Shown one piece after another: positions 10,459 through 60,419 of a stretch of 64,000 bases of DNA; within the stretch, counting starts at the first letter, position 1; every line of letters starts with the position of its first letter. The DNA lies in NCBI RefSeq assembly GCF_001194135.2, contig NC_068981.1:115634430-115698429 (forward strand). Direction: 5' to 3'. The translations under genes and the position numbers were made by a program. This stretch comes from Octopus bimaculoides. Lineage: Eukaryota. Below the pieces are notes generated by a model. It was not told the DNA's origin and searched no databases. It saw nothing but the letters and a program-made list of their open reading frames with translations.

Positions 10459-13400
10459 ATATATATATATATATNNNNNNNNNNNNNNNNNNNNNNNNNN
10501 NNNNNNNNNNNNNNNNNNNNNNNNNNTATATATACAAGCATAGAAAAATATCAGACAACACGAAGTCTTGCTTTACCAAAATTATTTTCACTGCTAGAGG
10601 ATGTATCATACTTACCAAATGGCACTTACCATCCCCATATGAGGAGGGGAGATAATCAAAGCAATCAAGAATTTTCCAAAGCTGACATGTCAGTAAAGGA
10701 AAGGTCTGGCTTATTGTCTAGAGATAAGAGGATGTGTTTCTGCCTCAGTAGCCGTCATCAGCAAGAAAATTGTCCAATTTCATCTCCAGTAGCCAAAGAA
10801 CTTAAACTTACACAAAAAAAAAAACAGAAGTAGAATACACTTATGGCCTAGTTAAAGTGGTTATTTTAAACAAAAATGAGTGAAGATAACACAAAGTGGC
10901 CAGTGGTATGTGTCTGAACAACAAGAATAATATAAATTCTGGAGAATTCTTGATTGTTGAGATCATCTCCCCTTATCATATAGAGCTGGTCTTAATTGCT
11001 ATTTGGTAATTATGCTACAGTCCTCTAGAGGTGGTTTTTCTGTCAAGGCAAATGACCACAAACAGACATCCTTGTTGATGGACAAAAATTATTTGGAAAC
11101 TGTGATATGAAGGAAGAAATAGGAACATTAAACAGACAATTTTGGACAGCATAGCAGAGTTTAGAAATAGCTTATGATGCTGCAACCCCTGTCCAGCAGA
11201 AAAAGTTCATATCATTCAGTCACATTTCTAAATAGATAAAAAGAGAATGTATTTCAGCTTGTCACTTCAACCCTTCAACCCCATTAAGGAAGACTTTTCT
11301 GGTGTATGGAGACTGAAATCATAGATCATATTGTCACTGTCTAAAATATCAGGTGACATTTAAACTCGCAATCCTAATCTGTAACTGCTTTCACCTCACT
11401 ATCTATACAGACAAGGATGACTGCAAGATACTATCATGGATATATATTTCATAATATTTACCCCTCATCCATTCTCTCTTGCACTTGTTGACTAAAAGAT
11501 TAAACTGAATATCAATCATATTATAGAGACTGTGTGCATACGCACGTGCATGTGTGTATAGACTTGTGTTTGGATTATAATACCTTCCATATGTTTTGTT
11601 TGGACTAGATATTCTTGAGCCATGCTGGTTTTGTCTGCTCCTATCAACTGCCAATGGCTAATAAGCTCTGCACAGCGACCTCTGGAGGAAACAAACAGAA
11701 AAAAAAGACATTCAATAATAATTGTACTTGTATGATTTTGATGTGTGTGTTTTCTGTGCTCATATCATTTTGGTTCCAAAGTAAAATAATACAATATTAA
11801 AGATGATAGTTCTTAAGACATGGTAGTTGGTAAAATAACATTAACAAACAATTGTGAATGCTATCCTGAGTAAGTAACAAGGAAGCTTCTAGATTATATT
11901 CCAACTTTCTTGAAACAGCAGTCAAATGTTCTCCAAATCTCACTCTATAAGTAATATTAAAAGAATTAATTAACTAATGTAGTCCTTGACGCATCACATC
12001 TGGCAAAGTGTTTTGATGGTAAGTAATGGAATATCTTTGACCATAGTTTCTATTAATCAGGACTGACTTGAGTCGAAATAGTAACTTATAGTGGACATTT
12101 CATGTACTGGTTTTTGTGCTGGAAATCAGAATGAGTTGGGTAAATTAGTTTTGTGAATGGTGCTTTAAGTAATGGTCATCATTTTAGATTGTGTAATCAT
12201 AGTTAAATTACTTTGCTGTTGTGTTGTTCAGCCCTAGTTAAACAGGTTTAAAATTAAAAGCATTCCAGTCAAAAACATCCTATCTATTTTTCTCAAACAT
12301 TATGTGTCTAGGATTACATTAACTTAGATATCCCTTTTTTTTTGTAAGATAGTAGCATGTGCTTTCAAGAAGATTTGGCTGATATTTTTATCAGGTGAAA
12401 CAATCTTGTAGAGGCTCATTCCCTTGTTGATTTGTATATAATAGATTGCAATGTTTGTTTACTGTAGATAAATTGTAGGGTGTACATAGAAGCTTTAATT
12501 ACAAATTATTTAGAAATAAACATCATTAACTCTATTTCTTATATTAGCAAAATTTGCAAAGGGATAGCAAAACATCACCCAAACAATATGCCTGGCACTT
12601 TTCTGATGGACTCTTGAAGAAAATTTGAGCATAAAATATACAGTATTTCCTCCAGCACTTTTAACAAGTTTACAAAGTTAACAATATATAGCTGTTCTAA
12701 TAAGTTAACATATAAATATTTACAAACATTAACAAGCTAACTACAAAATAGGATGTAACCAAATAACTGACTATTGAAGGCCAGCTGTGTAATTATTAAA
12801 TATTATTCAAAATTGATTTATACTAAATATAAAATAAACAAGAATCAAACAATTACACATGCATCAATTCTAGTAGGAATTTTACTCTCTCAACATTTGA
12901 CATAAGAATAGCACAATGAAAAAAAATCCTTTAAATACTAAACATACTAAATAAAATGTAACTGATCAATGTAAACTTGAAACTGTATACAATAGGAAAA
13001 CAAATGTTAAGTAGGACATTGCAGTGCTACACTTAGTTGTAGGTCAACAATGCATCTACAGTAAAAAGGCTGAGTCATGTGTTATTTAATACAACACAAC
13101 ACAATGACCAATGAAAAAGTACTGCAAACATGTACGCAATCATTCAGATCAGAATCAAGTCTAGTTCAACAGGAGCATGACATGGTCACCACACACATAA
13201 CTGAAACCTTCACAATATGTACAAATGTGGGACATGAGATAATATTGTATGGTAACATATTTATAATATGGCAAAAGCTATGTTTTCTTTTCAGGACTAG
13301 AAAATACTTTATGTCTGTACTGAAGATAATGCTGGAGCCACTCCACACAAAACTATTAAAGGCAGCAACCAAGAAGTATCCAAAACTTCACTCAAGAATA

Positions 13401-19400: not shown

Positions 19401-20323
19401 ATCCTGTGGCACTCATAGCAGCATATTGGTTGAAAGGACAGCCTCCCACTCCAGTTGTCATCTAGGGATTTTACTTACTTACTTACCAACTTACATATGT
19501 TGTGTATGTTAACATATTCATATACATGTACACTTACTGGACATGTGCATATATAGACATATTTACATATATGCATATATACTGGACGTGTATATATATA
19601 TCATATTTACATGTAAGTATATATATGTGATGTTAACATATTTACTTATATGTGTACATATTTTCTTTCGTAAAAGCAACACCAGAATCTCAACAGATTG
19701 GAATTAGATTATACTCAAGATCCCATCAAGGTTCTAATTGGTATTGCAATTGTGGTAGTCTAGTTTCTGACCATGAGCTCTAAAATGATCTTCACATAAA
19801 TCAAAGTAGAATTCCTGACACAATTAGATCATGTTAAATGCTGAAAAGTATTGTGTAAAACTAGACTTGTCATGGCAGTATCATGTTGCTTTTACTTGCA
19901 GATTACATTAAAGGTATAACTTTGATAGTCTGTATCGAATTCAGTGTTGCACTGTGTTGTTGGCAAAAAGCTACTAGCTTCTCAATAGCTGAGTTCACCT
20001 AGTTGAAACCTCATACCATGTGAAAGGCAGCACAAAACACCATTGTAAATAATATGATTGTTGTATGNNNNNNNNNNNNNNNNNNNNNNNNNNNNNNNNN
20101 NNNNNNNNNNNNNNNNNNNNNNNNNNNNNNNNNNNNNNNNNNNNNNNNNNNNNNNNNNNNNNNNNNNNNNNNNNNNNNNNNNNNNNNNNNNNNNNNNNNN
20201 NNNNNNNNNNNNNNNNNNNNNNNNNNNNNNNNNNNNNNNNNNNNNNNNNNNNNNNNNNNNNNNNNNNNNNNNNNNNNNNNNNNNNNNNNNNNNNNNNNNN
20301 NNNNNNNNNNNNNNNNNNNNNNN

Positions 20324-20364
<41 letters not shown>

Positions 20365-20737
20365 ATCTATCTATCTATCTATCACTCGAAAGTTATTGGA
20401 ACAAATTTGACACCTATATCCATGCGTTTGAAAACACACAGAGTATAAGGGTACTACTAAAGCAGAGTGGTCCTGAACGCGCAGTCGTGCGTCCGCGCTA
20501 GCTAGTCGTGAGTGGTCGATCCTATTATTTTTAAACTTCAAACTTCATTTGTTTTCTATTTTGATAAATTCTCTCTGTTGAAAATTATATTTTCATATTT
20601 TAAATAATTTGCAATTTCAGAAAATATATTTTTATATTAAATTTGTGTTTTCTAATTTGATAAATTCTACGGACACAAACAGAGGTGAACAAGTGATAAA
20701 TAGATAGATAGATATATATATAGAGAGAGAGCTAGTG

Positions 20738-20768
<31 letters not shown>

Positions 20769-23600
20769 TAGATAGCTCCGGCTAGTCATGGTATTAGCTG
20801 TCAGTAGCCAAAGAATCAACTTTCACTTCTGAAAGCTAATACCATGACAGTGCCCAAATATTTAATGGTATGGAGTTCAAGGTAAGTTATGACATAGAAT
20901 TGTCTTCTGATAATGGTACTAGATAGAAAAAAACAAAGAAAGAAAATTACCTGCACCATGATGTCCTTTGTATTTTCTGACTCCCAAATAGTCTGCACTT
21001 TGTCTAAGACACAAACATATAGATCTACTGTGTCATTGCAGGACAGGATGTCTTTCAGATATTCCTTAGACTTCTCACTACGCTTCACTGTCCTGAGACA
21101 AAAAAAAAAAAAAAACAGAGAGAAAAACACAAAATTATAGTAAATTATATTATTATTTAAATAACTGATATTTTTATTTTTATTGATTTTGGAAAAATGA
21201 AAAATGAAGTTGTTAGCTGTATATGAAGTGTGAAGGTTTATCAGTATTAAAGATATACAGATTTTCTTTTAACATAAAAAGACAAATAGGAAGCTATGGT
21301 AATTATAATACTTGGCAAAAAAAAACAAAAAAAACAAAATGGTGCATCAGCTATGGTAAATAGACAATTGTCAATAAAGTGAATAGTTTTATTATTAAGA
21401 GAGAAGAGCAGTAGCCTTCATCGTTGTATGTGTTTCTAGAATGGCCAGGTTGGTATGACTGAGCTCCAGTTTGTAAACAGAAACTTATAAGAAATATGTG
21501 AGAATGGAGGGGATACCAAGGAGAACAACACTAAAGAGGAATTATTACGGAAATTTTCTTAGTGCAGGGATAAGTAGAGGACTGGGGGCGAAATACAGTA
21601 TAGGAGATAAAAGGAGGAGAGAGAGTTATATAAGGTATGCTTTAAAAAGGCAGAGGTAAGACAGTACTGCATCCAAGCTAGTGGTTGTACTGTACTGGTC
21701 AGTGAATCTTTGCTAATTAGAGCTGAAGTATTTTCCTTCCACAAAGAAAAAGCCTAGTCGTTGTGATTGACAATGTATTTATATATAATATTGTCATGAG
21801 AGATTATAAGTGATTGTGAGGCCTATCACTTGCAGTGCTGCTTAGTTGTTTGCTCTTAATGCATATGTGGAAAAACTTATTAGTGTAGTGATTGTGTCTT
21901 TGTGCTATTAAAAGATTCAAGATTATCAGGTCCCCATTGGAGGATGTTTTTGAAGTGCTTGATTACAAAAACAATGTATGAATGGTGTGTATGCACTTGT
22001 ATGTGGAAGATTAAAGAATAATGAAGAGTGGTACCATCTTACATGGGAGTATGTAGTTAGAAGTAATAACAAGAAGGTCAATAATGTACTCAAGGAAGTA
22101 TTAGCCAAATCTAGTAGTTTAACTCCAGATTTGATAGAAAAAGCCTAACGAACATGAACTGCAATGGGGTAAACTGAGAGAAAATTCATGATCCAGGAAA
22201 GGAGAGACGGATAAGAGTATCTCAGTAGATAATTTAGTTAGGATGTTCTTATGTTAGATATAGATTAAAGCTGAAATTGATGACATCAAAGAGAAAAATT
22301 CATGTTCCTATCTGAAGGCTGAAGATTACTAGCAAGTGATATAAGAAAATATGGATGTGGCAAAATGGAAAACCAAAAGGCTGGTTATTGCAAAAGATGA
22401 AGAAGGTGCCTGCTCCCATTACTTCTGTGACACATGGTTCCATGTTCTTTTAGATTATGTAGACAAAGAAACTGTCAGCTAATTCAATTGTTTTACCAGC
22501 AGAAGTTCATCATGCTTGAACAATGGCAGATAAACAGATTGTTCACAGTTTGAGGAGATACTCTTAGTAATGGTTTGGGTACAGTTTAGAAGTCAAGAGA
22601 GTCTGCAAGCTGTATGGAGTACGAAAGCATCATTTGCTTTTCTGATGCTTGTTTTACAGTTAAGGAGAGTGTTGTTGACTGGATGATGCTTGATAAACGG
22701 TTTTGTTAATCTTATACTTGCAGTTATCAGATTGGCAGAATTCTAACAGCATTGGATGTCTTGCATTGCAGTATTTATTCAGGAATTCTTGTGTTCTGAG
22801 TTTTTGCTCAGGTTAACTTTGCCTTTCATCCATCTAGAGGTTGATAAATAAAGTACCAGTCTAAGATGATAGACTGGTGGGATTGTTAAAACTTCAGATG
22901 GAATGCCTTGTGATACTTGATCTGGTTTGTTTTGAGTTTAAATACCACAGCAGCCTACTTGGATAGTAGAGCTAATTTATTTACTGATTGACTGCAACCA
23001 CCTGATTCTTGGATGTCTTTAGTGAAGCCTACTCTGTTGCAAGCATATAGACCAGGTTTCTGATTTGAAGATACCTCCCACTATTTTGAAAGCACTGTAG
23101 GAGGCACAACTTTTAATTCTCTTCAATGAGTAAGAAATTGCATATTACATTTGCTGCCATGAACTGGTGAACCTCAACCAGTTAACCAAGAAGTAGTACC
23201 AGTGAGTTTGGAGTAGGTTAAGAGTTACTGAGCAATAGAAAGATGTAAGTCTGTATCGAATTCAGTGTTGCACTGTGTTGTTGGCAAAAAGCTACTAGCT
23301 TCTCAATAGCTGAGTTCACCTAGTTGAAACCTCATACCATGTGAAAGGCAGCACAAAACACCATTGTAAATAATATGATTGTTGTATGACTAAACTTTGC
23401 TCAACTGAATTTCCTCCAAAGGCAAAACCTGCTATAAATTGGTGCCCAATCCAGCAGGTGATACAGTTCAAATATTGGCACTGTCATGGTATTAGCTGTC
23501 AGAAGTGAAAGTAGAAAAATCTGACAAGGAACGTTACTGCTGGTTTGAGTTGATTCTTTGGCTACTGACAGCTAATACCATAACTGGCCGGAGCGAGCTA

Positions 23601-23635
<35 letters not shown>

Positions 23636-26600
23636 ATCTATCTATCTATCTATCACTGGGCAATGACTGCAGATAGAGTGATGAATAGGGTAGAGGATTA
23701 GTATGTCAGTTAGGATTGAGAAAAGAAAATTTTGAGTCAAAGTAACTAGAAATATTTGTTATTGATATCTAGAGGAGACAGTTAAGTTATAAAAAGTGTG
23801 GGTTCTTCATATATATATATAGACATCACCTTAAGAAACAAAGTTGGAATATACAAAGAGTATAGCAGGACAATAGAGATAGGCTTGTATTTCAGAGTTT
23901 CAGACAGATGTGTTGTATTAGATACATAAATATAGACAACTACCTACAATTTGTATCAGAAGTAGTTTTAGTTTCTGCAAATATTATCTACAAATGGTAC
24001 AACTATCATACCATCCATAAACGGTAGAACATGGCAATAAGATTAAAATTAATCAGGATTTAAACTTTAATCTAGAAAATTATTTAACATTTGACCATCG
24101 CCTATTTGTAGAGTTGTCAACCTCTTATGTTAAATATTAAATATTAAATCCAACTTCTCTGCATAAAAATAGTTAGAGCACATTTGCTACTACACTACAT
24201 ATGACTATTGCAAACAACATATGTAACATGGTTCTAGGATAAACTAGTGTTTATTTAACATGATAAATCTGGTGCTGGACCCATAGACCACTCCAATATA
24301 TGTGATAGCAACCTCTGAGTCATCCATCCCAATGAAGTAATAGCTAAGAAGAATGGGTTGAAAAAATGTGTTTGCAAAAATAATCCTCAGAATAAGTTAA
24401 ATATATGTGAGTTGAGAAAGCTGATGGCTATTTAAAGCATTAATCAATGTACAAAGCAGAAATGACTTGTTTTGTAGAAACATTTAATGCTCAGAAGTAT
24501 CTGGAGTTGACAGTGGAGGATACATGTGACAAAGATAGAAAAAAAAATTCTGAAAAAAGGCAGAAAGATCAAATCAAACGTTGCTAGGTTGTCAAACAAG
24601 ATAATGAAAGATCAAGATAAAGAGGTATATATTGTACAGCAGTCACATCAAAACATTAATGTTTAAACAATTATGATAATTATGGAGTCAGCCAATAATT
24701 GTGGAGACATTGATGTAAGGCATAATGTCATATATTTAAGATTGTGACTGAGTATTGTAAAATTAAAAGTCACTTACCATACAATATGTCGAGTTAAAAC
24801 CATAGTAAACAGTGGTGCACAAGTGTCATCAGTCTGGCAGTGTTCTAGGAAACTGGTCTCTTCTTCTTGACTCAAACGAATGTCAAACAAAGCTAGCTCT
24901 GCCCTGAGAAGTTCTTTGACATTTTTCTTGCTTAATGGATCTAGATGAAGTGTTGCCCATTGTCTAGAAGTAGAAAATTCAGAATAACAACCAGACTTTT
25001 AATTTTTACTTATTTTTGTGTGTTTTACCATTGTTCCCAAATATTTCATACTTGTATTGGCAGACTGGCTTTTCAAAAGAAAAACACATTTGTATATTAA
25101 TATAAATATCTTTGTCCAGCAATTATTTAAAGGAATTTTTTTCATCGTTCTTTAATGTTAATGTGTAAGGATAACACATAGAGGACTATGTAATCACTTA
25201 GTTTGATAGAATTTCAACCATCTTAAAAAAGGAAGGATTTACTGGAACAATGTAGTCTTAAATATAATAAAAAAAGATAAAACTGTCATAGTTGAAAAGC
25301 TTTTGATCATAGGTCTGCTCAATCAGGCTGACCTGGGGCTAAAAAACAACAGCATATCACAATACCTTATACTATATGTAATAAATAGTGTTTGTTAGAA
25401 TTTTAAGATAAGGCTAGTATGTGTATTATGGCAAAATAAGATTCTCAGTTTCTATAATAAAAGTTCATTAACCTTCCTCTCTTATATATTCCTGGTATTC
25501 AGTTCCCTGACTATAGATATTTAGGCTTAGCAGCAGGGAGCTCAATATCCTTTGTACTCTATAACTTGCAAAAATAGATCTAAAAGATTTGCTTTATGTT
25601 GATGTTTGTAACAATGACTTGCATGTGACAATTCCTTTTTAGGTGACACTACTTACAGAAGATGCCTCTTTGAGTCCAAGAAAACTGATGCGTGTAATTT
25701 ATAATATCTTACCTCCAAGACTGTGGACAAGACTTTTCATTTACGGTTGCTATCACATGAACACCAACAGGCAACGGATCCAATAACCACTTGAGGTGTT
25801 CTTCAGCTTCCTTGAGAAGATGAAAAAAAAAAAAAAAAATGAAAGGAAATAAACAAAAAACACCCTGAATCCTGTAATCTAATTTGCAGAATTAAAATGG
25901 TTGAGTGTGTAAGGTATTAGAGCACAAGTTCTTAAGTTGGAAGTTCATACTGTAATCTAACTACATACCTCATCTGCCTAATTTGAAAGAATTAATATCA
26001 AGTCTTTCTCAAAAAATATTAAACAGAGTATCCTATTCCTTAGAAAAGAGTTGGCAGTGATACGTTTTTGATCTTTTTAAGACAATTGAAACTGGAATTG
26101 TGAATTGGACTCCTGATAATTTTAAGAAGTCTAACTTAATTCCAAATTTCCTAATTTACAAAGTCTCATCATAAACTCGGTATATTTCCAACAGCAGTAC
26201 CAAAAATGACTACATAGACACACTGCCCTAGAGAATCCTGAGCAATGGCTGCTGCTATTGTAGCAATCACTCTCTCTTTGTTTTTTAAGGAACTTAATAT
26301 AATTATCATATTCCTTCAGTCATACCAGCAAAGTCAGCATTCTACAAAATGTATATGTCCCTTAATCCCTGAGAGTCTTTAAGGGTTGGTGCTTAACTTT
26401 GGTTTCATGACAGTAGATATATGAAAGATAAATCTCAACCATGAGTTAGTTGTCATTCTGTTCAGTATGAGATCTCAGAAAATCTTAAAACTATTTCTGG
26501 CAGTTAGGTAACAGAAAATCAGAAATGTTCTACCCAAATGCACAACAAAGACTTGCTGCAGATTTGAACTAAAAACTTTTGAGTTGCTGGTCCAATACCA

Positions 26601-29600
26601 AACCACAGATTTAGAATATACAGAAAGCAATAATTTAACCATTGCAAAGCCTTATTTAATAAAATGAATGTAAAATAAAATGTTGTTATACTTGTGGATG
26701 GCCATATTTTGCCAATTAAACACACACACAGTTGGCAAAATATGACCATCCCTGTGTATAACAATATCTGTTTCAAAATACAATTTCACGTCAAGAATTT
26801 GGGAAAACAAATACATAAACATAAAATAGAATGAATGTATCTCAAAGATGATGAAAACTGTTTGTTACTTACTTGAAAGAGGTCAACAGAATCAAGTACC
26901 AAAACTACCCCGCCAGGTAGTCTTGATGAAACTTTCTCTAACCATCGAGGAAACTCCTCTTCCAGACGTACAGGGTTACATGTCAAAGCAGGTGGTGAGG
27001 TAACATGCTGCATCAGCTGTGTAAAAGAAATAAGCAAATCAGATTATAGATTTCTTTTCATTACACTTTGACTTTCTCAATAGTCTCAAAGGGTAGGCTG
27101 TGACCTTACTGGAACACCACTAACACAAAACTAAATTTTGTAAAAGTTGGATTAGTCCTGATGAAATTTACATGGCAACTATGTAAATTCCATCAGGCGG
27201 TGTTATCAGCATGTATCTTAACATTTTTTAAATATATGTTAGGTAAGGAAGAACGAGGAACGTACTCATAAACTTTGTAGGCCCTCCAAGGTGGCTAATG
27301 CCTAATCTGAAGAGCTATAGTTCAATATCGAGGTATAAAACATAAGAGAGAAGGTAACCAGAATTTATAACAGGGTGGACTCCTATAGACATCTAAGATA
27401 GAAGTGGTGTTAAACTAGTAAGTACGTAAGATACATTACCCATGATGCAGCATTATCTTTGTAGACAAGAGGCAGAACTCTAAAGTCTATCTAAATGTAA
27501 ATAGGTAGTACAGGGTGTGAACAACCTACCACTGTAGGCAGTGGCAGCATTAAGAAACTGTTGAATGTCTAGTTGACTTGCAGTTCTGAGTTTAACTCAA
27601 CTCATGTATATTACTTGGAGAAAAATGGGCTAAAATATAATGGTGCTAATTCTGTTGACCTGGAAAAGACAAAATTTGAAGTTGATCCCAGTGGAGTTTA
27701 ACCCAGAATGCATCAAGCTGAAAACTGCAAAGTAAATAATTTTGAAAACTGTTGTAATAACCATCTCCACCAACTTTAAGAACAAGGCTGGTTCTGTAAT
27801 GAAATAAGGAGCATAGTTGAATGATTCAAAACTCTGCTCCATGACAGGGTTTGAAGTCAGAATAAAAAATAAGATTAATACTGGGTTTCAAATTTGGGCA
27901 TAAGGCCAGTAATTTCAGGGGAGAGAGTAAGTCAATAATATTGACCCCACCCAGTGTTCAACTAGTATTTATTTTATTGACCCTGAAAGGATGAAAGGCA
28001 AAATCAACCCCAAAAGCTTTTGAACTCAGGATGTAAAGACAGAAGAAATGCTGCTAAGCATTTTTACTGGTGGGGTGATGATTCTGTACAAGATTAAAAA
28101 TGAAAACCATTTACATTAGAGAGCATCTTGCACTCTATTATCACAGACATCTCTTCAGTTATTAACAACATCAATAAAGAAAATGAGAATTTTAAATACA
28201 GGCAAAAGGCCACAGATTTTGTGGAGGGAGCATAATCTATTAAACCAACCCGAGAGGGAGGAAAGGTAAAGATGACTGCAGCAGGATTTAAACTCAGAAT
28301 GTAAAGGAATTAAATTAAATACAGAAATTCTGCCAATACAGGCAATGAAAGTGTTTGCATACATGTACAAATACAATAAGCAGAATGACTGAAATACCTG
28401 GGCTGTAAACCGTCGGATCATAAATATGGGATCAGCACCAACAGAAGACTTGGATCTGACGAAATGACACATGACTAAGCAACTAGGATATTTTTCTTGA
28501 TGAAGTTGGGTCCTACAAAAACAAAAGAGAAAAATATAAATATTCAAGTCATTTAAACAATTTTTATGATTTCGAGCATTGGCACAGGGACAAAAATAAA
28601 AGCAAAATAGTAATTATTATTATTTTTAACACTGGTACAAGATCACACATTTATAGAAGTGCAATGGTTGATAGAACCAACTGCCTGAATGTAGCAGGTA
28701 CATATTTGTACTGACTCTGCAAGAATGAAAGGTAAAGTCAACTCTGATAGGATATAAACTTTCAACATGAAAAATATAACACCATAATTTATCCAATATT
28801 ACTGATTGTTTCATTCACAACTTTTTTTTGTGAAAACAGGAATATTCTGCTACAGATTTTACTAATATATTCACTGGAAGATTAACCAGTTCTTCGTGGA
28901 GGTGCATGGCTTAGTGGTTAGGATATTGGACTCATGATCGTAAGATTGTGGTTTTGATTCTTGGACCAGGCAACGGGTTGCGTTCTTGAGCAAAACACGT
29001 AATTTCATGCTGCTCCAGTTCAATAAGCTGGCAAAAGTGAGTAATTCTAGCGTCCCATCCAGGTGGTGAATTTATATGCCATGAAACCGGGAAACCAGCC
29101 CTTATGAGTCAACATGACTCAAGAATGTAACTTTACCTTTACCAGTTCTTCAAGTTAAACTGGTATGAACATCAACTGGATCTAGTTACTGAAGTTGAAG
29201 AGATAACTATACTGTAAGACTTCCTTATGTTCATCAACTGCATGATCAAAACATATTGGTCAGATAAAATATTAAATAAAAGGGCAGGATATGCCTAATC
29301 CTTTAAGCTAATGAAGTTTTTATAAAGAAATTTTACAAATTTTAAGATCTACTGATCTCAGTAACAATAACAATGATTTCTGGGATAGGCACTATGCCAT
29401 TGAAGATAGTGTTAATTAGATTGACTCCAATATTTGGTGAAATTTAAAATCAAAATGCAAATGAATGTAACTAAATCTGCAATCCATTGGCAGCCATAAC
29501 TATAATTAACAACAATAATATATTAATAATATCTATGCAGGAGAACAAATGTATAAGCAAGCAGTACAGTTGACTGAATCAACCACAATACTACAATATT

Positions 29601-32600
29601 GGACAGTTATTCTCTTTTGTTTTCGTAGGACCCAACTTCATCAAGAAAAATATCCTAGTTGCTTAGTCATGTGTCATTTCGTCAAATCCAAGTTTTCTGT
29701 TGGTGCTGATCCCATATTTATGATCCAACAGTTTACAGCCCTGCAATGGGTCCAAATGGTAGATGTAGACTATGTAAAGATTTGAACTCAAAATGTTGAA
29801 GTAGAACACTAAATACTGTAAGGCATTTCATTCAGCATTTCTTTTGCTTTAATAATAATTTCTTTATTAAGCATCAGGCCAGAAATTTAGTGGAAGAGGA
29901 ACAGTCAATTTAATCAGCCCAAGGAACAAATACTACTTTATTTTATGAACCTCAGAAGTTGACCTCAGCAGGATTTGAACTCAGAATGTGAAGAACCAGA
30001 ACAAATATCAAAGGCCTTTTACCTGATGTACTAATAATTCTACTGATCTGTTGCCCTACCTTATAGTGATTTCTAAGAGTGACAAGCAAGCTACAAAATC
30101 TGAGGGGGGGATATTTAATTAAATCAGCCCCAGTATGCTAACAGTATTTATTTTACCAACACTGAAAAAATGTTAGTGTTTTAAATGAGAAAAGACTGTT
30201 TGCTCCAAGACTAAATATGACTAGGGGAAGGAAACACACAGGAAAATGGGTGGATGTGGGAAATAATTAGGTAGGATACAAAATAATTATACTTTAAGAT
30301 TATATGTAAATAATGGGTATGTGGATATTTTGAAAATACCTCATGGAGTGACAACTATCTGCATAGTTACGGCTACCCTTTGGCAAGACATAGCATCTGT
30401 TCAGCCACCCTGTCAGGGATAGCCATGGGACTGCAGCATGGTGGATTATGAAGAGGTAGTGAAAGTGCTCAAATGAACCAAGGGTGCTTCTAACATTGAT
30501 GCTGAGCAGAGGAATCCTAAAAGAACAATGTTCAGGATCACTCAGCTCTGTCAAGAGAGTAACTGCAACGCATCCATAGTGGTGGCATCTATGGTTGCGT
30601 AATCAGCTAAAGAGAGACTCACTATGAAAAGCTCTCAATTCAAATTCATAATAATGGAATTGGATGGCAACAGAGAGCCATGGGAATCCGCAAAGGCAGC
30701 AATAAAGTAGCATATATAAATAAATAATAATTTTAGTATTTTGTTTCTGGTACAATATAATAATCTTTAATTAACTAACACTGGAAATTATTTGACAGAA
30801 CACAGACACAAATAAAAACAAAAAATATTTGGATCAGACCAACATCTCTATAAATAATAAAGTTGAATTACAGAGATGTACTTGCATAGCAAGTGATTTG
30901 ATCTGAGATTGTGAGCTTAAACAAAAACAATTGCAGCGTGGAAGGTGTTTATAAGCCATTTAAAAAACATACAAAAACCGTTAGATTCACTTCAACATTT
31001 AAATTTAATTTGTCAAAATATTTTTGTTGCTTTGAAACTGCAACTTGTTCACTGACAAAATTCCATGCTGCATCTTGGAATTTTGTCAGTGAACAAGTCG
31101 CGCATTTCAAAACGACAAAAACATTTTGACAAATTAAATTTAAATGTTGAAGTGAATCTAACTTTTTTTTTTGTGTTTTCAATAAAGATGAAATTTAAGG
31201 AGTGATCATTGTTCTTTCAAATGTTGAAATTATTCTGGGTTCTCTCCAGATAAAAAATGAAAAGTGAATAAAAATTTCATTTACCATTTTGCTAGGAGCA
31301 AAGAACGACCGGTGCCAGAAGAACCAATGATCAAAAGGGGTGGCTGAGGTCCACAGGCATGTACATGACTATTCAATTGCTCATAATACTGAAATAGATG
31401 AGACAGGAATTACAATTAGAGGAAAATATTTAAAAAAAAACCTTATATCAATAAAACTTGCTGATGTCTTATAGTACAGACTGATTCTCAATTGCTTAAA
31501 ATTATTTCACATTCTTTTCGAAAGGTACTAGCAACTGATGTTAGGTATTTGTTTTCTTTCTCCAAAAGAAAAATTTCAATTAATAAAGTATTTTTTGCAG
31601 AAGTCATTCACACAGCACATCATATTTATCTAAATTTAAGCCAATATCCAACTTGAGTTATTTCCCTTAGCTGATTTTTATTTTTTTATTATCACTAGCC
31701 CAAAATTACTTGTGACATTTTTCTTTCTATATAAAAATTTGTCAATGGACCAATGTAGTTTTGAGTAGACAATACTATACTGATGAAATTCAATAAGACT
31801 AAAACCTGTCCATAACTGCTTCCCTTGCCTGCAAACAACTATCAAATTTTCCCTTATGTTTGTAAATAGTTTTCAGAAATTAATTCATAATTTCTTGAAA
31901 TTATTTCTATTTTCTATGAAAGTTATAAACAATTACCACCATGTTTTTTTTGTAGTCTCTCCCCAACTAAATGGGAAATTTCAATAAACTGAGACTTTTT
32001 TTTTATCCAAGTCATTCTGTACATCACATCTTAATTTATCTATTTAAATTCATGTCACAAGCCCACATGAAATAGTTCCCTTAGATCATTCTATTTTTTT
32101 TTTTACTTAACACAATGAGAGATAGATAGATAGATAAATAAAGAAAGAGAGAGAGAGAGAAAGTAGACTATTATTATTCTTATTGTACTGCACTGTAAGG
32201 TCATTGGCATTAGGAAGGGCATCTGACTGTAAAAACCATGCCAAAACTGACAGTAAAGTGCAATGCGGTCCTCTGGCTTGTCAGCTCTGGTCAAACCATC
32301 CAGCCCAGGCCAGCATGGAAAACAGATGTTAAATAATGGTTATGATGATGATGTACCAATGTAAGAAAATCTTATCAATATTATTTTAATGTTGGAATGT
32401 TAAAAGAAAAAATGATGTGCTACATTAAGGATTTATCATACATAATTATTTCACTTTAATTCAGAATTCAGATTCAGTTAACTACACTCCATCTCCAACT
32501 AATGTATCACCTTGTGCCAATATAAGATATCACCATCATCACCACATACTAGCTTAGGTTAGTGTTAGGGTTGGTATCAACTAACCCCTCCTGGCCTTTT

Positions 32601-35600
32601 GCCTAAATTAAAAACAGTCGTTTTTTTCTTGACCCCAGTACTCAATTTGTTTTTTATTTTATTGACCTCAAAAGGATGAAAGGTGAAGTTGACAACAGCA
32701 GAATTTGAACTTAGATCACTAAGAGCTACAATGTATTTTTCTGGAGTTGCTTTCTGATTTAGGCATAAGGCAAGCAATTTTGAGAGAAGAGGTTTAATCA
32801 ATGTCATAGGCTACACTACTTCATTGGTATTTTATTGTATTGACCCCACATGGCTGAATGGTCAAGTTGACCCCAGTAATATAATTATAATTATTATTAT
32901 TAGGGATAGTGGTGGTGGTGGTGGTGGTGGTGGTGGTGGTGGTAGTAGTAGTAGTAGTAGTAATAGTAGTAGTAGCAACAGCAGCTTTTATAGGTTATAC
33001 TCTCAATCGGTCTGACTAAGGTTTTCTATTCAACGGGGGATACACTGAGTGAAACATTGAGCAAAAATGTGATGCAAGCCAAACAAACTGGAGAAGCATC
33101 ACAAGCAACACATCAACAAATGACAAATACACCACATACCTTTGCAATTGCACTAACACATGCAAGTGTGACTGCAAGTAGAAGCCCTCTAGACATCATT
33201 GACAAAAGCTGCCCACCTCGTCATCAGTTGGAGGATGAGCTATGAGAAAAATGAGCAAGTGGCAGGGATTTTAGCAGCATGCAATGCTATGAAAATGGAA
33301 GATGATAACAATGCAGATGATGGAAATGATGAGGATGCATTAATAATAAAGACAATGATGATGAAAATTCATTTACCTTCTCAAAGCCAAGCTCACAACT
33401 TGAAGATAGTGCAGCATTAAGAGCTACCATATGCTCATAGTCACATTGGATGTCCCACAAAGCACCACCACATAGTTGTTCAGGACCTTCTAGTTCAGAG
33501 TAACCACAGTCACTTTCTGGTTTTTCCTTTTTGGCATCAATACCAAGTTCCTGTGTAAAGTATTAGATATAAAACTTTAGACAATTCAACATCAACATGG
33601 AGTCGAAATATTGGCTTACTTACTGACCACATAGAGAAAGATTCAAACATTCTAATAATCAATTAGCATCATCATCATTTAACATCTATTATCCATGCTG
33701 ACATGGATTAAATGGTTTAACTGGAGATGGTAAGCCAGAGAGCTGCACCAGGCTCCAGTCTGTTTTGGCTTGGTTTCTATGGTTGGATGCCCTTCCTAAT
33801 GCCAACCACTCCACAGAGTGTATTAGGTGTCTTTTACATGTCACCAGCACAGGTGCCTTTTACGTGTCACCAGCAAGGGTGCTGATTCCGAAAAACAAAA
33901 CATGACATTGGGATAGTTTTTCAGTACATTTGTCCATTTGCATATAGTGAATAAAGTAGTAGACTATCTACCAACTCATAGATTGTGAGTTCAAACCAAC
34001 ACCAGGCAGGTATATTTCTTAGTGTTTCTTAGCAAAACACTATATTCTACATTGCCTCACTTTATCTAACTGTTAAAAATAGATATCAGATGACCTGAGA
34101 GTGTTAGACCAATAATCTATAGTAGACCAATAATCTGTTCCAAGGGAGGTCAATTTTTCATCTTTTAATATCTTAAAACATGTTTAGCCATTGTTGATTA
34201 AACCCAGTTGAACTCTGACAAGTCATTTCAGTTATGACCATCCTATCTTTTCTTCAGACATAGTCTATCCAATCTGTCCTCTCATTGATTAAGATGGTTG
34301 GGTGCTGTTTCTACCAGGTTGAACAAAATGTAGGTGTTGCAGTATTGGCTCATCTATGTTTTGTAGTTGTAGTCTCTTCTTATTGCAAACCATTCAACCA
34401 TGAATGTGAGCAGTATCTATTGTCATGTCTGATCTAGTGGGGACACCATAATAACTCCAAAACAATTTGAACATATAAGTTTGTAGCAGTAGTCTAACAT
34501 ACTAACGTACGATCAAATAATACAGAATGCTTACCATTTTCAATATCTTGTCAATTTCATTATAGGCTAACTCAGCACCTTTGGCTGGTGTGTTATAACC
34601 ATTCAAGACACGGACGTTACTGCTCTGGATGTTCAGGTTATTTATTTGCGTGCCATCATATCTGAAAAGTAAAAATTTATCATTATCATCATCCTCACCA
34701 CTACCAATTCTGTTATGACACTTTCAACATTATTATGTTTGACATTGTTGCTATTTTACCCAAAACCAAATTCATCATCATAATCATCAGCAGTAATACC
34801 AAAGTGAGTTCTGGTATACTTAGAAGATTCAGAAGATCACACTACAGCTAGAAGTTTCTTTAGTTCAATTCTACAGCACAACATAGACTGACCAATGTCT
34901 TGTGAGTGAAATGAAAATCATGCAGATGGAAATTGCACAGAAGCTTGTTGGAGAGAACATTCCTGTTTCTGAATGGTAGATTTAATCTATTTCCCCAGCT
35001 GAACATCAACTGGCCCATAGGTACTTTTAGTAAAGCCAAAGTCTGTTTCAAGCATTATAAATTCCTCCTAGAAGTCTCAAGGAGCCTGAAATAAGTCATG
35101 GATGTGTCCTTCCTTCACTGACTATGCCATACCAAAAGCTTAAAACAAAATTTTAAAAAAAACTTTTTCTGCTGGGGTTATCATTAATGGACTCAAAATC
35201 CATTAAACTTCCTTCTTTTTGATTCACACCATATTTTCAAATGAAGTTTGCTATCTCCTCTCAGCAGCAACATTCTCCAATACAATGATGGTCAACTCTT
35301 CTTAAGCACACTTATGGCATAGAGGCCTGGTACTTTAGATATACCCACACAGAATGTTTGATCTAACAAATTTCACTGAACATTAAAGATTTGATCAACA
35401 TTGTAGTTGTAGTTAAACATATCTTCATAGTTGTATGTAATGTCCTAAGCTTTAGGACTTCAAAATTAAAAGCCACAAAATAGTTTCTTAAAGACTTACT
35501 TGCTACACTGAACAGATTATGTAACAAGCATGGAAAGCGGATGTTAAACGATGATGATGATGATGATGATAATGATAGTGATGATGGTAAGTAGGTCTAT

Positions 35601-39982: not shown

Positions 39983-42900
39983 GAGAGTGAGTGCTCATCA
40001 TTGCTGCTGTCACCATCATCAATACATACGTACATGTAGAGATGCATAAGTACATACATACATAAATATGTATACACATCCGTAAACACACACATGCATG
40101 CACACATTCATCCATCCATACATTCATAAATGTATGCCCCTAGCATTGGGATTTTGAACTTTCATCTCTAACGTCCGAGTCTGACATTCTTAATTACTTT
40201 GCTATAGTTTTATAGAAATTTAGAGATGATTATTATTTCTTTCTGGTAAAGACCAAACCAAGTAAAGATAAGAAAGAAACATTTACCTTTTGAAAAATAT
40301 CAAATTCCATTTTGCTATCATTAGAGATGGACACAAAAATTCGAACTACATTAGCAATTAAATGCTCTGGAATTGTAGGGCTGATTTGTGTAAGCTTTCC
40401 AAGGGCCAAACTCCAATCCTCTAATGAAGAAAAAAAAAATATGTAAATTAAAAAAAAAAATCAAATAAAGAATAAATGAGTTTGAAATGGAAATGGAATG
40501 GTATGTTGACCCTTGTTTTACCTAACACATTATCAGTCAGTATGAGTAAAGCAACACTAATAGCAATCAAGAAAACATTCTTCTTTAATGCTTTAACACA
40601 AAAGTAAAAACATCGTCATCATCATCATTTAATATTTGCTTTCCATGCTAGCATGGATTAGGTGGTTTGACATGGAGCTGGCTAGCAGGGAGTTGTCCAG
40701 GCTGCAATTGTCTGTTGTGGCATGGTTTCTACAGTTGGATGCCCTTCCTACCACCAACCACTTACAGAGTGTGCTGGGTGCTTCTTACGTGCTCCCAGCA
40801 TGGGTGTGTTTATGCAGCATTGGCACAGGTGCTTTTTATGAGGCACTGGCACCTGAAAGGACAAGCCTGCATGGATGGAAGACAGCAATTATACTTAGCT
40901 TGACATGTTTTATTATCAAGTACAGCAAATTGCCACATCTGGTCCCTTGTCATTTCCTCAGTGAAGCCCAGCATACGAAGATCCTTTCTCACCACTTTGT
41001 CCCACATCTTCCTGGGTCTACTCCTTCCACAATTAGATCTTAGTACTTTTATATGCAGCTGTCCATATTCATATGCATCACATGACCAAACCAGTGCAGT
41101 CTTCTCTCTTGCACCTAAATCTGATGCCTTTTATACCTAGTTTTCCTCTTAAATTATTTACATCCTATCATACATGCACACTGACATTATCCATCCAGCA
41201 GACCATGCCAGTTTCAATTCTTTCAAGCCTTCACAAGTCCTCTGTAGTCAAAGCCCACATTTCATTGCCATGTAACAAAGCTGTATGTACACAGACATCA
41301 TACAATCTGCCTTTCATTCTGAGGGAAAGGCCCTTAATTACCAACAAAGGTCTAAACTCTCTCAACTTTGCCCAGTCTGTTCTTAATCTAGCAACTACAC
41401 TTTCAGAACTTCCTCCACCATTGCTAACTTGGTCTCATAAGTAACAGAAACTATCTACTACTTCTAGTGACCCTTCTGAGCATGAGGGAGTCTATTGTCT
41501 GCACATTTTTAGCGTTTATTGTACCAGCACATTTTCTATGCACAAATATATTCTCCATTAACCTTCTTGTGATACTGCTACACCTTGTGTGTCCAAAGCT
41601 TACACTGGGTACAACATATGGAGTGTCTACCAACACCCTTCTTACATATCGAGCAAGACTATCTTCCAGAAGGAACTTGTAATTTGTCTGTTTTCCTACT
41701 TGCTAGGACTTTGGCTTTTGCTAAATCAACTCTAAGGCCCTTAAATTCCTGGCCTTGTATCCACACCTGAAATTTCTTCACTAGGTTAGGTAGTGATTCA
41801 CATGAATATGCAATATGATTTTAGGCCAATGTCATATTCTAAAATTATCTAGAAAATATAGAAATGGAATACAGTATTAGAAGAAATTGAATGAACTTAG
41901 ACATGAGTCAATTGATTTGTCAGAAGATACGTTTATTGAATGAATGAATTCATGATCAGTCAATTTCCAGAAAATTTTTTAATCAGACACCTAATTAATT
42001 TCAGTATATCTCTTTATCCAAAAAGAGATATTAATTGTTAGTGTTCAACTCTGGTTTTATAGAATTTAGCAGAGGCAATACAAATGCTTCTGTTCTCACT
42101 TTTTTTCATTTTTTACTCGTACTCGTTTCAGTCATTAGACTGCAGCCATGCTGGGGCACTGCCTTGAAGAACTTTTAGTCAAATGAATCAACCCCAGGAC
42201 TTATTTTTTTAAGCCAGGTACTTATTCTATTAACCTCTTTTGCTGAACTGCTAAGTTATGGGGATGTAAACACACCAGCACCAGTTGTCAAGTAGTAGTG
42301 GGAGACAAACACAGAAACAAAGACACACACATACAATGGGCTTCTTTTAGTTTCTGTCTACCAAATCCAGTCACAAGGCTTTGGTTGGCTCAAGGTTATA
42401 GTAGAAGATACTTGCCCAAGGTGCCACACAGTGGAACTGAACCCGGTACCATGTGGATGGGAAGTAAGCTTCTTACTGTGAACAACGTCAACATATCACA
42501 GGTAATAATACTAGTTCTGGTACCAACCTATTCCCAATGCACAATCAACCCCAAAAACATGCACACACTTCTACAACATAATAATGTAAATAATGTGACC
42601 AAGACTGTCAGTGGTTTGTTGGGTTTGAGAAGACACACCAAGCTTGGCGAAATTGTATTAGGTTGTCAAGAAAGTTCTTGCGGTTTTTAGCCTTTAAATT
42701 CAGATGCACATATCTCGGCTCAAACAAAACTTTATTAATCGAAATAAACACCATCAGAATCAACACACTTTTGCCAACACGAAACAAGTTTATTTATGCC
42801 AGTAGCATAAAAATCCTGCATTCTGGTGGTGATGAAGTCGCTGAAGGTGTGTTTGGCATCGTCTTGGTTTTTGAAGCATTTCTCACGCAGGACGTTGTTG

Positions 42901-44421
42901 AGATGCTTGAAAAAGTGGTAGTCAGTAGGTGAGAGGTCTGGTGATGAGGTAGAATTTCATAGCCCAATTCGTTCAACTTCTGCAGGGTCGGTTGTGGACA
43001 TGCGGCCGAGCGTTGTCGTGGAGAAGAATCGGTCCTTTTCTATTGACCAATGCTGGCTGTTGTTGTTGGAAATTCTTATGCATTTCATCCATTTGCTGAC
43101 AGTAATTCTCTGCCGTAATGGTTTTGTCTGGATCCAAAAAGTTGTGATGGATGAAGCCGGCCGCAGACCACCAAACAGTCACCATGACCTTCTTTTGGTG
43201 CAACATTGGCTTCGGGAAGTGCAGTGGAACTTGTCAGCATCTAACCACTGAGGTGAGCATTGCCGGTTGTTGTAAAGAATCCACTTTACATCGCAAGTCA
43301 CAATCCAGTCGAGAAACGGGTCATTTTTGTTGCATACAAAAAGGGAAGACGACACTTCAAAACGGCATTTTTTGGGGGGGTTGTGGTTCAATTCGTGCAG
43401 CACCCATTTCTCAAGTATTTTTGTTTTTCCAATCTCTTTCAAGTGGTTGGAAATCATCGTATATGTTACGTCTGATTCAGAAGCAACCTCTCGAACATTT
43501 GTAAGTGGAGTGGCTTCGACTACGGCTCTTAGCTGATCGTTGTCAACNNNNNNNNNNNNNNNNNNNNNNNNNNNNNNNNNNNNNNNNNNNNNNNNNNNNN
43601 NNNNNNNNNNNNNNNNNNNNNNNNNNNNNNNNNNNNNNNNNNNNNNNNNNNNNNNNNNNNNNNNNNNNNNNNNNNNNNNNNNNNNNNNNNNNNNNNNNNN
43701 NNNNNNNNNNNNNNNNNNNNNNNNNNNNNNNNNNNNNNNNNNNNNNNNNNNNNNNNNNNNNNNNNNNNNNNNNNNNNNNNNNNNNNNNNNNNNNNNNNNN
43801 NNNNNNNNNNNNNNNNNNNNNNNNNNNNNNNNNNNNNNNNNNNNNNNNNNNNNNNNNNNNNNNNNNNNNNNNNNNNNNNNNNNNNNNNNNNNNNNNNNNN
43901 NNNNNNNNNNNNNNNNNNNNNNNNNNNNNNNNNNNNNNNNNNNNNNNNNNNNNNNNNNNNNNNNNNNNNNNNNNNNNNNNNNNNNNNNNNNNNNNNNNNN
44001 NNNNNNNNNNNNNNNNNNNNNNNNNNNNNNNNNNNNNNNNNNNNNNNNNNNNNNNNNNNNNNNNNNNNNNNNNNNNNNNNNNNNNNNNNNNNNNNNNNNN
44101 NNNNNNNNNNNNNNNNNNNNNNNNNNNNNNNNNNNNNNNNNNNNNNNNNNNNNNNNNNNNNNNNNNNNNNNNNNNNNNNNNNNNNNNNNNNNNNNNNNNN
44201 NNNNNNNNNNNNNNNNNNNNNNNNNNNNNNNNNNNNNNNNNNNNNNNNNNNNNNNNNNNNNNNNNNNNNNNNNNNNNNNNNNNNNNNNNNNNNNNNNNNN
44301 NNNNNNNNNNNNNNNNNNNNNNNNNNNNNNNNNNNNNCCCTTAAGGAATCTAATTAATGATCTCCTAAGGTAAGTTCTTATGCTATATTGGTAACGGTTG
44401 CCACATCCTCTGGAAAAAAAT

Positions 44422-58382: not shown

Positions 58383-60419
58383 GGTCAACCATAATATAAA
58401 ATATTATATCCAAATTTTTATATCAATACCTGAAAAAGTAGTACGCAACATTATACAAGACAATTCACAACTAAACTGGAAGAAGTAAAGCTAAATCACT
58501 TAAGCCATTCCATCATTTCATATGTATTGACCAATTTGAGAACCATTGCTCCTCTAATTTAATGTATTCCATTATCATAAACTTCTAAAAAATTGTAATA
58601 TAACTATTCATCCGTGATGTTCTGACACATTTGAACATGAATATCTGATCACTTTATTTTTCATCAGCAGAGAACACTTCTCTGTAGATGATGTGTATAC
58701 ATAACACTCATGATTCACTGGTCTCTGAGAGATTGCGGTGTTTCGATCTTATAGTGCGTCACCTCAATCAAAGCTATTCCACCAGATTGATGAATCTCAC
58801 AAGAGCACTGAATTTAGAATTTAGCAAACAAATTATTTGCTGATGAATGCTGATGTCGGCCTAATATATAATAATTCATGAGGTGAATAGAGAACAATGA
58901 GAATGCAAACAATAAAGTGTATAGTCATTCTTAATACATTTTGCTATATTCAAATGAGAATATCTGATTCCTGTTATTTTTGGCACCAGAGAACACCTCC
59001 TCTCTTTCAACATTATGTATTCAAAATACAAATGATTCACCAGTAGAGAGGTTTTGACATTAATGCATGTATGGAAGACATAGCTCGGTGGAATTTTGGT
59101 TTAAGTACACCATATAACTAACACCTTATAACTCTTATTTTTTGATATTTTCAGAAAATTATTGTAAGTTTGTGTTCTACTCATGGGAATTCATACGATT
59201 ATAAGAAAAGATGGAAATTCTCATAAATTCTAAAGTTTCCACTTTTTTTCAAATTTTTTAAAATTAGAGTTTAAAGGAAGGACAGTGAAAATTGTTTGCT
59301 TAAATCCCAGCAATGGACTGCCCTTGGGTGAATCATCATTCCATTAAATGTGTTTATGGGAAGAAAATATTGAAAAACATCAATACCTGTCAGAGACACA
59401 AAGAAACGAGGAAGATATCAGGTGGACGTGAGATGTGTGCTAAAAATAACAGCTAAATCACCCTTAAATCATTTTTTTTTCTTTTTGTGTAATCGTATGA
59501 ATTCTTGTCTGTGGAACACAAATTTGTAAAAATTTTCTGAAAATAGAAAAAAAAAAATCAGAAAAAAATCGAGGGTTATATGGGGTGCTTAAACCAGAAT
59601 TCCGCTCATAGTTCCACTATAGGTAAGTATTGCGACAGTTTGAGAGACAAACGTGTCTATCGGGTTATAAAGTCCCTATTAATTTTCCGTGTATATGGAA
59701 ATTACCAAAGTAAATGGATCTCTGTTCGATCAAGTGACTTACTCGCTCATTGAAGTTGCGTTTAAGTCATTGAACATTTCTTAGGCATGTGTACCCTTAA
59801 CGCAATGGAATTTGTGATATAGTGTGACAAGGCTGGACGTTTAAATTACAGGTATAAATTACCAAAGTACAAAACAATGAACACCACGAATGGACGAGGG
59901 AACTTCTATGTGGCTACTCAACCTGCTAGAAATGTTTACCAAGAGGAGAAATATGTTGAATAATATAGATCTAAACACTTTAACTGCGAAAGAAAAAGAT
60001 ACAAGGGATGACCACGTTTGGTAGGCCTTTGATCACAGGTTTGCTCGATTAGAGCTGGTTCGCAGTTGAATAACAACGGCAACTGTATTCAGAATACCTA
60101 ACTTTTAAATAGAGTTTACGAAAACTTAACAATAGACTTATTTATAAGTTATGTTAGAGATTTTAAAAATACATGAAAGCAATTAGACGAATATATATAT
60201 ATATATATATAAAAAAAAACATGAAGTTTAGAGAAAGTATATAAACACAAGTATATATTTAAAATGTCAAGAGAGAGAGAGAGAGAGAGCGGAGGAGGAA
60301 ATCAATAAACATTACAGTAAGTATACCTGATAACATCGACAATAGTTGTGGTAGTTTAATAAGTTATCTTACATCTATAACTTTATAATGTATCCAAGTG
60401 TCAGCGAAACGTCAATCAG

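Follow-up and report, generated by a model that had tools for sequence, protein, structure and literature searches.

The nephrocystin-3 locus and its exon 11

The stretch of Octopus bimaculoides DNA analyzed in the current study (64,000 nucleotides of contig NC_068981.1, hereafter the window) carries the gene for nephrocystin-3 (NPHP3) on its minus strand, and the subject of this report is the eleventh coding exon of that gene together with an inverted copy of the exon that lies in the intron immediately upstream. The first coding exon, at ~52889-52455 (MGTGSS...), matches JGI proteins named nephrocystin-3, and NPHP3 of the cuttlefish Acanthosepion pharaonis matches the exons of the window at 80-96% per exon, while bivalve and coral homologues match the downstream NPHP3 exons less closely than the cuttlefish does. 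Besides, exons 10-14, when joined, scored 27.5 bits against the Pfam NACHT family (cut-off of 26.7), with weaker matches to NPHP3_hel and NPHP3_N that remained below the Pfam cut-off, and a TPR-rich open reading frame (ORF) was located at 4267-4578. Taken together, the named orthologues, the NACHT match above its cut-off and the TPR-rich ORF assign the gene to NPHP3. The exons and splice signals relevant to the present analysis are the following:

26873-27016, minus strand: exon 12, 144 nt, starting with CTGATG
28398-28512, minus strand: coding exon 11 of NPHP3, 115 nt, phase 2 in and phase 0 out, with acceptor ...uuuuuguag/G and donor CAG/guauuu
28513-28514, minus strand: AG of the 3' splice site of intron 10; its adenosine, 28514, stands in a U-A-G triplet and is paired inside the predicted duplex
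28513-31284, minus strand: intron 10, which carries the copy, 2,772 nt (the orthologous cuttlefish intron has ~950 nt)
31285-31388, minus strand: exon 10, 104 nt, encoding Walker A (GSSGTGRS) and ending in TG-

The splice sites of exon 11 can be read directly in the sequence and agree with the coordinates, strand and length proposed in the initial annotation of this DNA, whereas its rank as the eleventh coding exon was obtained by counting the upstream tblastn matches and agrees with the same source. The exon product consists of (W) plus 38 residues located between Walker A (exon 10) and the Walker B / hhhhD motif (exon 12) of the NACHT domain. This peptide aligns residue for residue with coral (Acropora) NPHP3 (WIALQQSSLSGRLVIYHFVGSTSSSSANPILMLQRFTAQ) and, in the same manner, with the homologues of Acanthosepion (a 39-residue stretch), Solemya and P0027. 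The exon has been kept in coral, bivalve and cuttlefish, and is also present in a coral-like JGI metagenome contig (L004) that holds no informative intron. The earlier claim that loss of the 115-nt exon would shift the reading frame was upheld, since skipping would join ...AAATG of exon 10 to CTGATG of exon 12, and the new junction reads TGC TGA, an immediate stop.

The inverted copy, its polarity and its age

Repeat search and base-by-base comparison delimited an inverted repeat with two arms of 135 nt, at 28400-28534 and 29607-29741, that are 95.6% identical. Self-BLAST of the 64-kb window recovered the same inverted pair (E ~1e-57, far beyond chance) and a copy count of two, with no further copies, and the inverted exon copy is confirmed in the assembled sequence. 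The pair can be described as follows:

28400-28534, minus strand: exon-side arm, the source of the duplication, comprising 113 of the 115 nt of exon 11 and, from intron 10, the final 22 nt with the polypyrimidine tract and the AG
28535-29606, minus strand: spacer and loop of the predicted hairpin, 1,072 nt of unique intronic sequence with a fragment resembling a short interspersed nuclear element (SINE) at 28689-28760
29607-29741, minus strand: intronic arm, the inverted copy, antisense to exon 11 in the minus-strand pre-mRNA
29694, minus strand: adenosine of the sole A·C mismatch of the predicted helix, in the intronic arm, opposite exon C 28447

The extent of the duplication had previously been given as 131 nt with five differences. 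This holds exactly for the core (28400-28530 / 29611-29741); the true arms are 4 nt longer and include a sixth difference at 28532. As stated earlier, the copy lies within the preceding intron of one and the same transcript, and the distance of ~1.1 kb given for the arms agrees with the length of the spacer. The six differences, written as the exon-arm base followed by the reverse complement of the intronic arm, are 28411 C/T, 28414 C/T, 28447 G/A, 28456 C/T, 28517 A/G, and 28532 A/T, and the 135-nt alignment contains no indels. The boundaries are sharp, as identity drops at once to the chance level outside either end of the arms. On the exon side the arm ends 2 nt short of the donor; the intronic arm, when read on the plus strand, is exon-like, with an intact acceptor and no donor. 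Low-complexity sequence aside, the high-identity repeats of the window include just two inverted cases, the exon-11 pair and a palindrome of 78 nt at the start of the window, and searches with Rfam and ARAGORN over 26-32 kb returned no match at either arm.

The polarity of the event was determined by comparison with the orthologous cuttlefish locus (L003, 70 kb, Acanthosepion pharaonis, GCA_903632075.3), as had been suggested in the initial annotation. The orthologous exon is present there, with 115 nt and identical boundaries, and no second copy of exon 11 was found on either strand across the 70 kb. At all four exonic differences (codons GGT, TCA, CGA, and CGT) the cuttlefish nucleotide is that of the window exon and not that of the intronic arm, and all comparable protein outgroups side with the exon at these sites, which identifies the exon as the source and the intronic arm as the copy. 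The reverse polarity, in which the exon would have gained A-to-G changes after the duplication, is ruled out by the same outgroup match. Exon 11 has thus remained unchanged at the four sites since the duplication, and the copy has accumulated four derived transitions over 113 exon-derived nt (~3.5%), two of them CG>CA, which would translate into R>K, S>F, R>Q, and R>Q; one more transition, located where the arms derive from the intron, likewise involves a CpG. The caveat raised earlier, that the differences might reflect neutral CpG decay, is therefore borne out by exonic changes that are all in the copy, are all transitions and fall at CpG in two cases. Because the cuttlefish has the exon without the copy, the duplication is lineage-specific, and these sequence comparisons indicate that it is much younger than the octopus-cuttlefish split.

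The highest protein identity among the relatives found was that of the ENA assembly ERZ21867824 (92% in exon 1), whose loci L001 and L002 cover exon 1 and exons 13-15, with exons 10-12 lying outside their coverage. Exons 13-15 of this assembly are closer to the cuttlefish than to the window, and in exon 14 the window departs from the cuttlefish and from the cuttlefish-like ERZ21867824 sequence at the same positions. The protein identity to the cuttlefish supports a coleoid cephalopod as the source of the DNA, and the exon-14 differences are compatible with an octopod. The intron between exons 13 and 14 measures ~8.8 kb in ERZ21867824 versus ~0.75 kb in the window, a gap in size explained by a retrotransposon insertion in ERZ21867824, where that intron contains a 931-aa reverse transcriptase/RNase H ORF (L001, 5945-8740).

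The NPHP3 introns also carry numerous copies of a SINE-like family of ~200 nt, fragments of which lie to either side of exon 11 and within the spacer:

27884-28085, 28239-28315, 28689-28760, 29955-30064 and at least six further sites: SINE-like copies

One SINE-like inverted pair (32204-32344 / 33667-33805, 75% identity) flanks NPHP3 exon 9 (33368-33550), an arrangement that favours back-splicing or skipping of the enclosed exon in other animals. Additionally, inverted simple-repeat tracts (20716-20821 / 23548-23653, 91% identity) flank exon 15, and the regions 42738-43500 and 40630-41820 contain Mariner-like transposase ORFs, which adjoin a 790-nt N gap at 43548-44337, and retroelement-like ORFs, which are located in intron 3.

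The predicted duplex and its possible consequences

The initial annotation had called for the minus-strand transcript of the region to be folded, with the expectation of a near-perfect duplex. When 1,381 nt of this transcript were folded, the two arms were predicted to pair in both the minimum free energy (MFE) and the centroid structures, with no competing local structure for the helix in the predicted ensemble. The arms alone gave -236.6 kcal/mol for the minus strand versus -224.8 kcal/mol for the plus strand, so that the transcribed strand favours the pairing by ~12 kcal/mol. The predicted 135-nt helix contains neither bulges nor internal loops. Positions 28411, 28414, 28456, and 28517 form G·U wobbles and the 28447/29694 pair is the C·A mismatch listed above, so the earlier count of four wobbles and one mismatch in the core was right; the sixth difference (28532) is a U·U opposition near the end of the helix. 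According to the model, the helix encloses the 22-nt polypyrimidine tract, the AG and nearly all of exon 11, which agrees with the earlier proposal that the 3' splice site would be masked, while the donor would remain outside, as would a candidate branch-point region located ~38 nt upstream of the AG.

The number of wobbles could be taken as a sign of selection for pairing on the transcribed strand. Nevertheless, four wobbles among five transitions is not significant (p ~0.19 under a 50:50 null), and any transition produces a wobble on one strand and an A·C opposition on the other, for which reason the excess is no evidence of selection. The direction of the wobbles is the simple outcome of C>T changes that affected one of the two strands of the copy, with CpG sites accounting for half of these changes. 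The wobble pattern was thus rejected as a sign of selection, being accounted for by transitions in the copy.

During transcription the intronic arm would be synthesized first and the exon ~1.1 kb later, after which both could zip into a 135-bp duplex hiding the polypyrimidine tract, the AG and almost all of exon 11, and leaving the branch-point region and the 5' splice site free. A long and nearly perfect duplex of this type, a classic ADAR substrate, would be open to promiscuous deamination, at the adenosines of the exon as well as at the splice-site adenosine in the UAG. ADAR prefers the UAG context, and an A opposite a C is also favoured. Exon 11 contains 29 adenosines, 21 of which would be recoding if edited. 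In addition, the duplex would compete with U2AF for the 3' splice site, in which case a share of the transcripts would skip exon 11 and run into the immediate stop. On the basis of the predicted structure, promiscuous ADAR hyper-editing, exon 11 skipping, or both would be expected.

These expectations are in line with observations in other animals. Editing in metazoans mainly hits the double-stranded RNA (dsRNA) that young repeats form, and coding sites within such clusters are by-products of hyper-editing (PMC9989829). The definition of dsRNA in that work asks for a minimum of 80% identity and of 50 nt, with a search that extends 2 kb to either side (PMC9989829), a range in which the exon-11 pair falls. 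It has also been proposed that long dsRNA may undergo hyper-editing at once when it stems from recent duplications (PMC4053966). With regard to splicing, ADAR acting on a double-stranded polypyrimidine tract of RELL2 displaces U2AF65, leading to exon exclusion and nonsense-mediated decay, and an acceptor AG can itself be destroyed by editing (PMC9105294).

Origin of the copy, its meaning and known systems

The explanation that we consider probable is that the copy is a young and incidental local inverted micro-duplication, neutral to slightly deleterious and not shaped by selection, which arose through a templated event at the DNA level and confers on the pre-mRNA the capacity to form a duplex. 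In such an event, break repair or template switching during replication would have copied a nearby stretch in snap-back orientation. No target-site duplication was found at 28399/29742 and no further copies were found in the window; the lack of both a target-site duplication and family members argues for a templated DNA event rather than transposition. Moreover, the window holds at least four other foldbacks, with arms of 78-134 nt at 75-87% identity, and the four that were compared (at ~10.6, 31.0, 50.4, and 59.1 kb, one of them in intron 10) proved mutually unrelated and single-copy in the window. With several unrelated foldbacks present, the exon-11 pair looks like the side effect of a general mutational process, and the same process may have given rise to all of them. 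Of the foldbacks that are spaced or imperfect, the exon-11 pair is the most recent, and no other has taken up coding sequence.

With respect to the individual foldbacks, the one in intron 10 (30958-31183) spans 226 nt, is 87% self-complementary and has an MFE of -129 kcal/mol (z = -20); it lies ~100 nt downstream of the exon-10 donor and is predicted to be the second long dsRNA-forming element of this intron, and Rfam returned only sub-threshold matches to plant-miRNA-like hairpins for it. Three spaced pairs, 10594/10940, 50391/50794, and 59090/59480 (extents of 10594-11028, 50391-50926, and 59090-59603), have arms of 85-134 nt with 75-84% identity and spacers of 260-270 nt, which suggests either that local inverted duplication has recurred or that each pair is the single copy of a different foldback element. 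The palindrome at 1-78 is perfect (a 39-bp hairpin with no loop) and could be real or an artefact of library construction or assembly.

Several observations weigh against the explanation of an incidental duplication whose transcript forms the duplex. Clear microhomology was not seen at the junctions, and the mechanism of origin is one that we infer. The copy has been kept long enough to reach ~3.5% divergence beside a frame-critical exon of a conserved gene. NPHP3 is presumably an essential cilia gene, in which a duplex that strongly blocked the exon should have been purged, and the persistence of the copy would thus mean that the duplex is rare in vivo or that its effect is small. In addition, much of the recoding in cephalopods is driven by structures formed by exons only, and some of it works on mature mRNA without introns (PMC7192619), so substrates that depend on an intron are not the rule in this group. 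Finally, there are gaps in the assembly, with at least one duplicate at a gap edge.

A first alternative is an inert relic, a real copy whose long-range duplex is rarely formed in vivo, owing to RNA packaging and co-transcriptional splicing, and has no measurable effect. A frame-critical exon of a conserved gene standing beside the copy through ~3.5% divergence is what such inertness would predict, and so is a loop of 1,072 nt, given that, in classic work, hairpins with long loops sequestered splice sites far less in vivo than in vitro. Nevertheless, the predicted ensemble contains a helix of -237 kcal/mol without competing local structure, and animals routinely edit inverted repeats that are one to a few kb apart (PMC8582992, PMC9989829). 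We regard an inert relic as improbable.

A selected regulatory element, either a newborn editing-complementary sequence (ECS) recoding the NACHT exon or a switch, sensitive to editing or temperature, that adjusts NPHP3 output by masking or editing of the 3' splice site, appears doubtful. In its favour, the duplex lies exactly over the 3' splice site plus the exon and ends 2 nt before the donor, the arms show zero indels in 135 nt, four of the five transitions keep G·U pairing on the transcribed strand, on which the duplex is 12 kcal/mol more stable, and coleoids edit heavily (PMC9068888). However, the proportion of wobbles is within chance (p ~0.19), the exonic changes are all in the copy with two CpG transitions, as neutral decay would predict, and the copy is absent in the cuttlefish. 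Furthermore, editing of a near-perfect 135-bp helix would be expected to be indiscriminate rather than site-selective, and comparable foldbacks without exon content are found across the window. Functional selection is thus disfavoured by the lack of the copy in the cuttlefish, the neutral substitutions, the near-perfect helix and the unrelated foldbacks nearby. Of the two suggestions made in the initial annotation, the structural reading stands, and the role as an ECS or as a regulated switch was not supported, considering the absence of the copy in the cuttlefish, the promiscuous editing that the helix predicts and the foldback background.

It could also be argued that the inverted copy results from mis-assembly of a gapped short-read scaffold. 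There are six N runs in the window, the palindrome at the window start is perfect, and a 141-nt direct duplicate (19927-20067 = 23248-23388), 100% identical, abuts a gap, the N run 20068-20323 beginning exactly where the copy at 19927-20067 ends; this duplicate is probably a gap-edge product of the assembly. Artefactual duplicates are, however, normally identical and located at gap edges, whereas the arms of the exon-11 pair differ at six positions, have unique flanks on each side and are more than 8 kb from the closest gaps. An artefactual origin of the copy is therefore unlikely, and we give it little weight.

Less credible still is a small-RNA locus in which the intronic hairpin would be diced into endogenous small interfering RNAs (endo-siRNAs) against NPHP3 exon 11. 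Inverted duplication of a gene segment and a long perfect stem are the features that recall such loci, but the hairpin, with its 1-kb loop, lies inside the pre-mRNA of its own target, dicing of a stem like this is normally counteracted by ADAR editing, and to our knowledge no endo-siRNA pathway of that kind has been described in cephalopods, which makes this explanation very improbable. As for a transposon, the 1,342-bp unit 28400-29741 has the architecture of a foldback element or miniature inverted-repeat transposable element with 135-bp terminal inverted repeats, and other foldbacks exist in the window, but an element that happens to resemble the exon is next to incredible and this origin was rejected, because one of the "terminal repeats" is the orthologous, conserved NPHP3 exon, which keeps its native position and splice sites, no target-site duplication was found and no other copy occurs in the window.

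For the present, the sequence data indicate one young duplication whose signature is neutral, and which constitutes a testable candidate for the birth of an editing duplex in a lineage that edits heavily. We also entertain, tentatively, the possibility that this is a newborn ECS caught at birth, in which ADAR-rich octopus tissues would heavily edit the NACHT exon (at up to 21 recoding positions) and the acceptor UAG. If so, both the protein sequence and the inclusion of the exon would depend on editing activity, and exon-intron editing duplexes could arise in one step through local inverted duplication of an exon. The origins of ECSs are poorly documented, as most of the long ADAR substrates known derive from pairs of transposons, and ECSs of the classical type are old and already refined. 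If the duplex is real and active, the locus would represent a natural experiment on how an exon-intron editing duplex is born, in animals of very high ADAR activity, and would bear on the competition among dsRNA formation, editing and recognition of the 3' splice site. The readout would be clean, as skipping would lead to an immediate stop and editing could reach 21 possible recoding sites. If the duplex is inert, the locus would instead place a bound on the long-range complementarity that a frame-critical exon can tolerate in vivo.

Known systems resemble this locus to different degrees. In the literature searched, no precedent was found for an exon-derived inverted copy acting as an ECS and no direct data were found on NPHP3 editing in cephalopods; NPHP3 was also not found in the portions of the supplementary tables of PMC8382921 and PMC9989829 that are available in text form. 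One parallel is the ECS, as in GluA2 (Q/R and R/G sites) and Drosophila syt-1, where an intronic segment complements an exon of the same pre-mRNA within ~1 kb. The locus has a complement in the same transcript (95.6% identity over 135 nt). Classical ECSs, in contrast, are short, imperfect, conserved and tied to particular sites, whereas the helix described here is 135 bp long, near-perfect and absent in the cuttlefish, so that it shows neither the conservation nor the imperfect pairing of an ECS.

Likewise, the predicted duplex resembles that of RELL2 exon 3, where ADAR2 opposes U2AF65, in placing the polypyrimidine tract and the AG in double-stranded RNA, with exon exclusion and a premature stop as predicted outcomes, and differs from it in that the complementary strand is the exon's own copy and the masking spans the whole exon. 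Regarding splicing controlled by RNA structure in general, pairing boxes over the splice signals are predicted (the 22-nt polypyrimidine tract and the AG lie in the modelled helix), and the box is absent in the cuttlefish. Young MIR genes of Arabidopsis and hairpin RNAs (hpRNAs) of Drosophila arise by inverted duplication of their target genes, and hpRNA or proto-miRNA genes share with the locus this origin and a long perfect stem; they are, however, separate units whose small RNAs act in trans, while the hairpin described here stands in cis in the parent pre-mRNA.

The locus also resembles the dsRNA of inverted repeats in pre-mRNA, such as inverted Alu pairs, which are substrates of promiscuous ADAR hyper-editing, in that two young and highly similar copies stand in opposite orientation ~1 kb apart in one transcript and are predicted to form a near-perfect helix. 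Unlike Alu pairs, the arms of the octopus pair are not transposable elements, and one of them comprises a conserved and unique coding exon together with the 3' splice site, for which reason promiscuous editing would recode the protein and touch the splice signal. Overall, the locus can be placed with the inverted-repeat dsRNA of pre-mRNA, with the particularity that the coding exon itself would serve as one of the arms.

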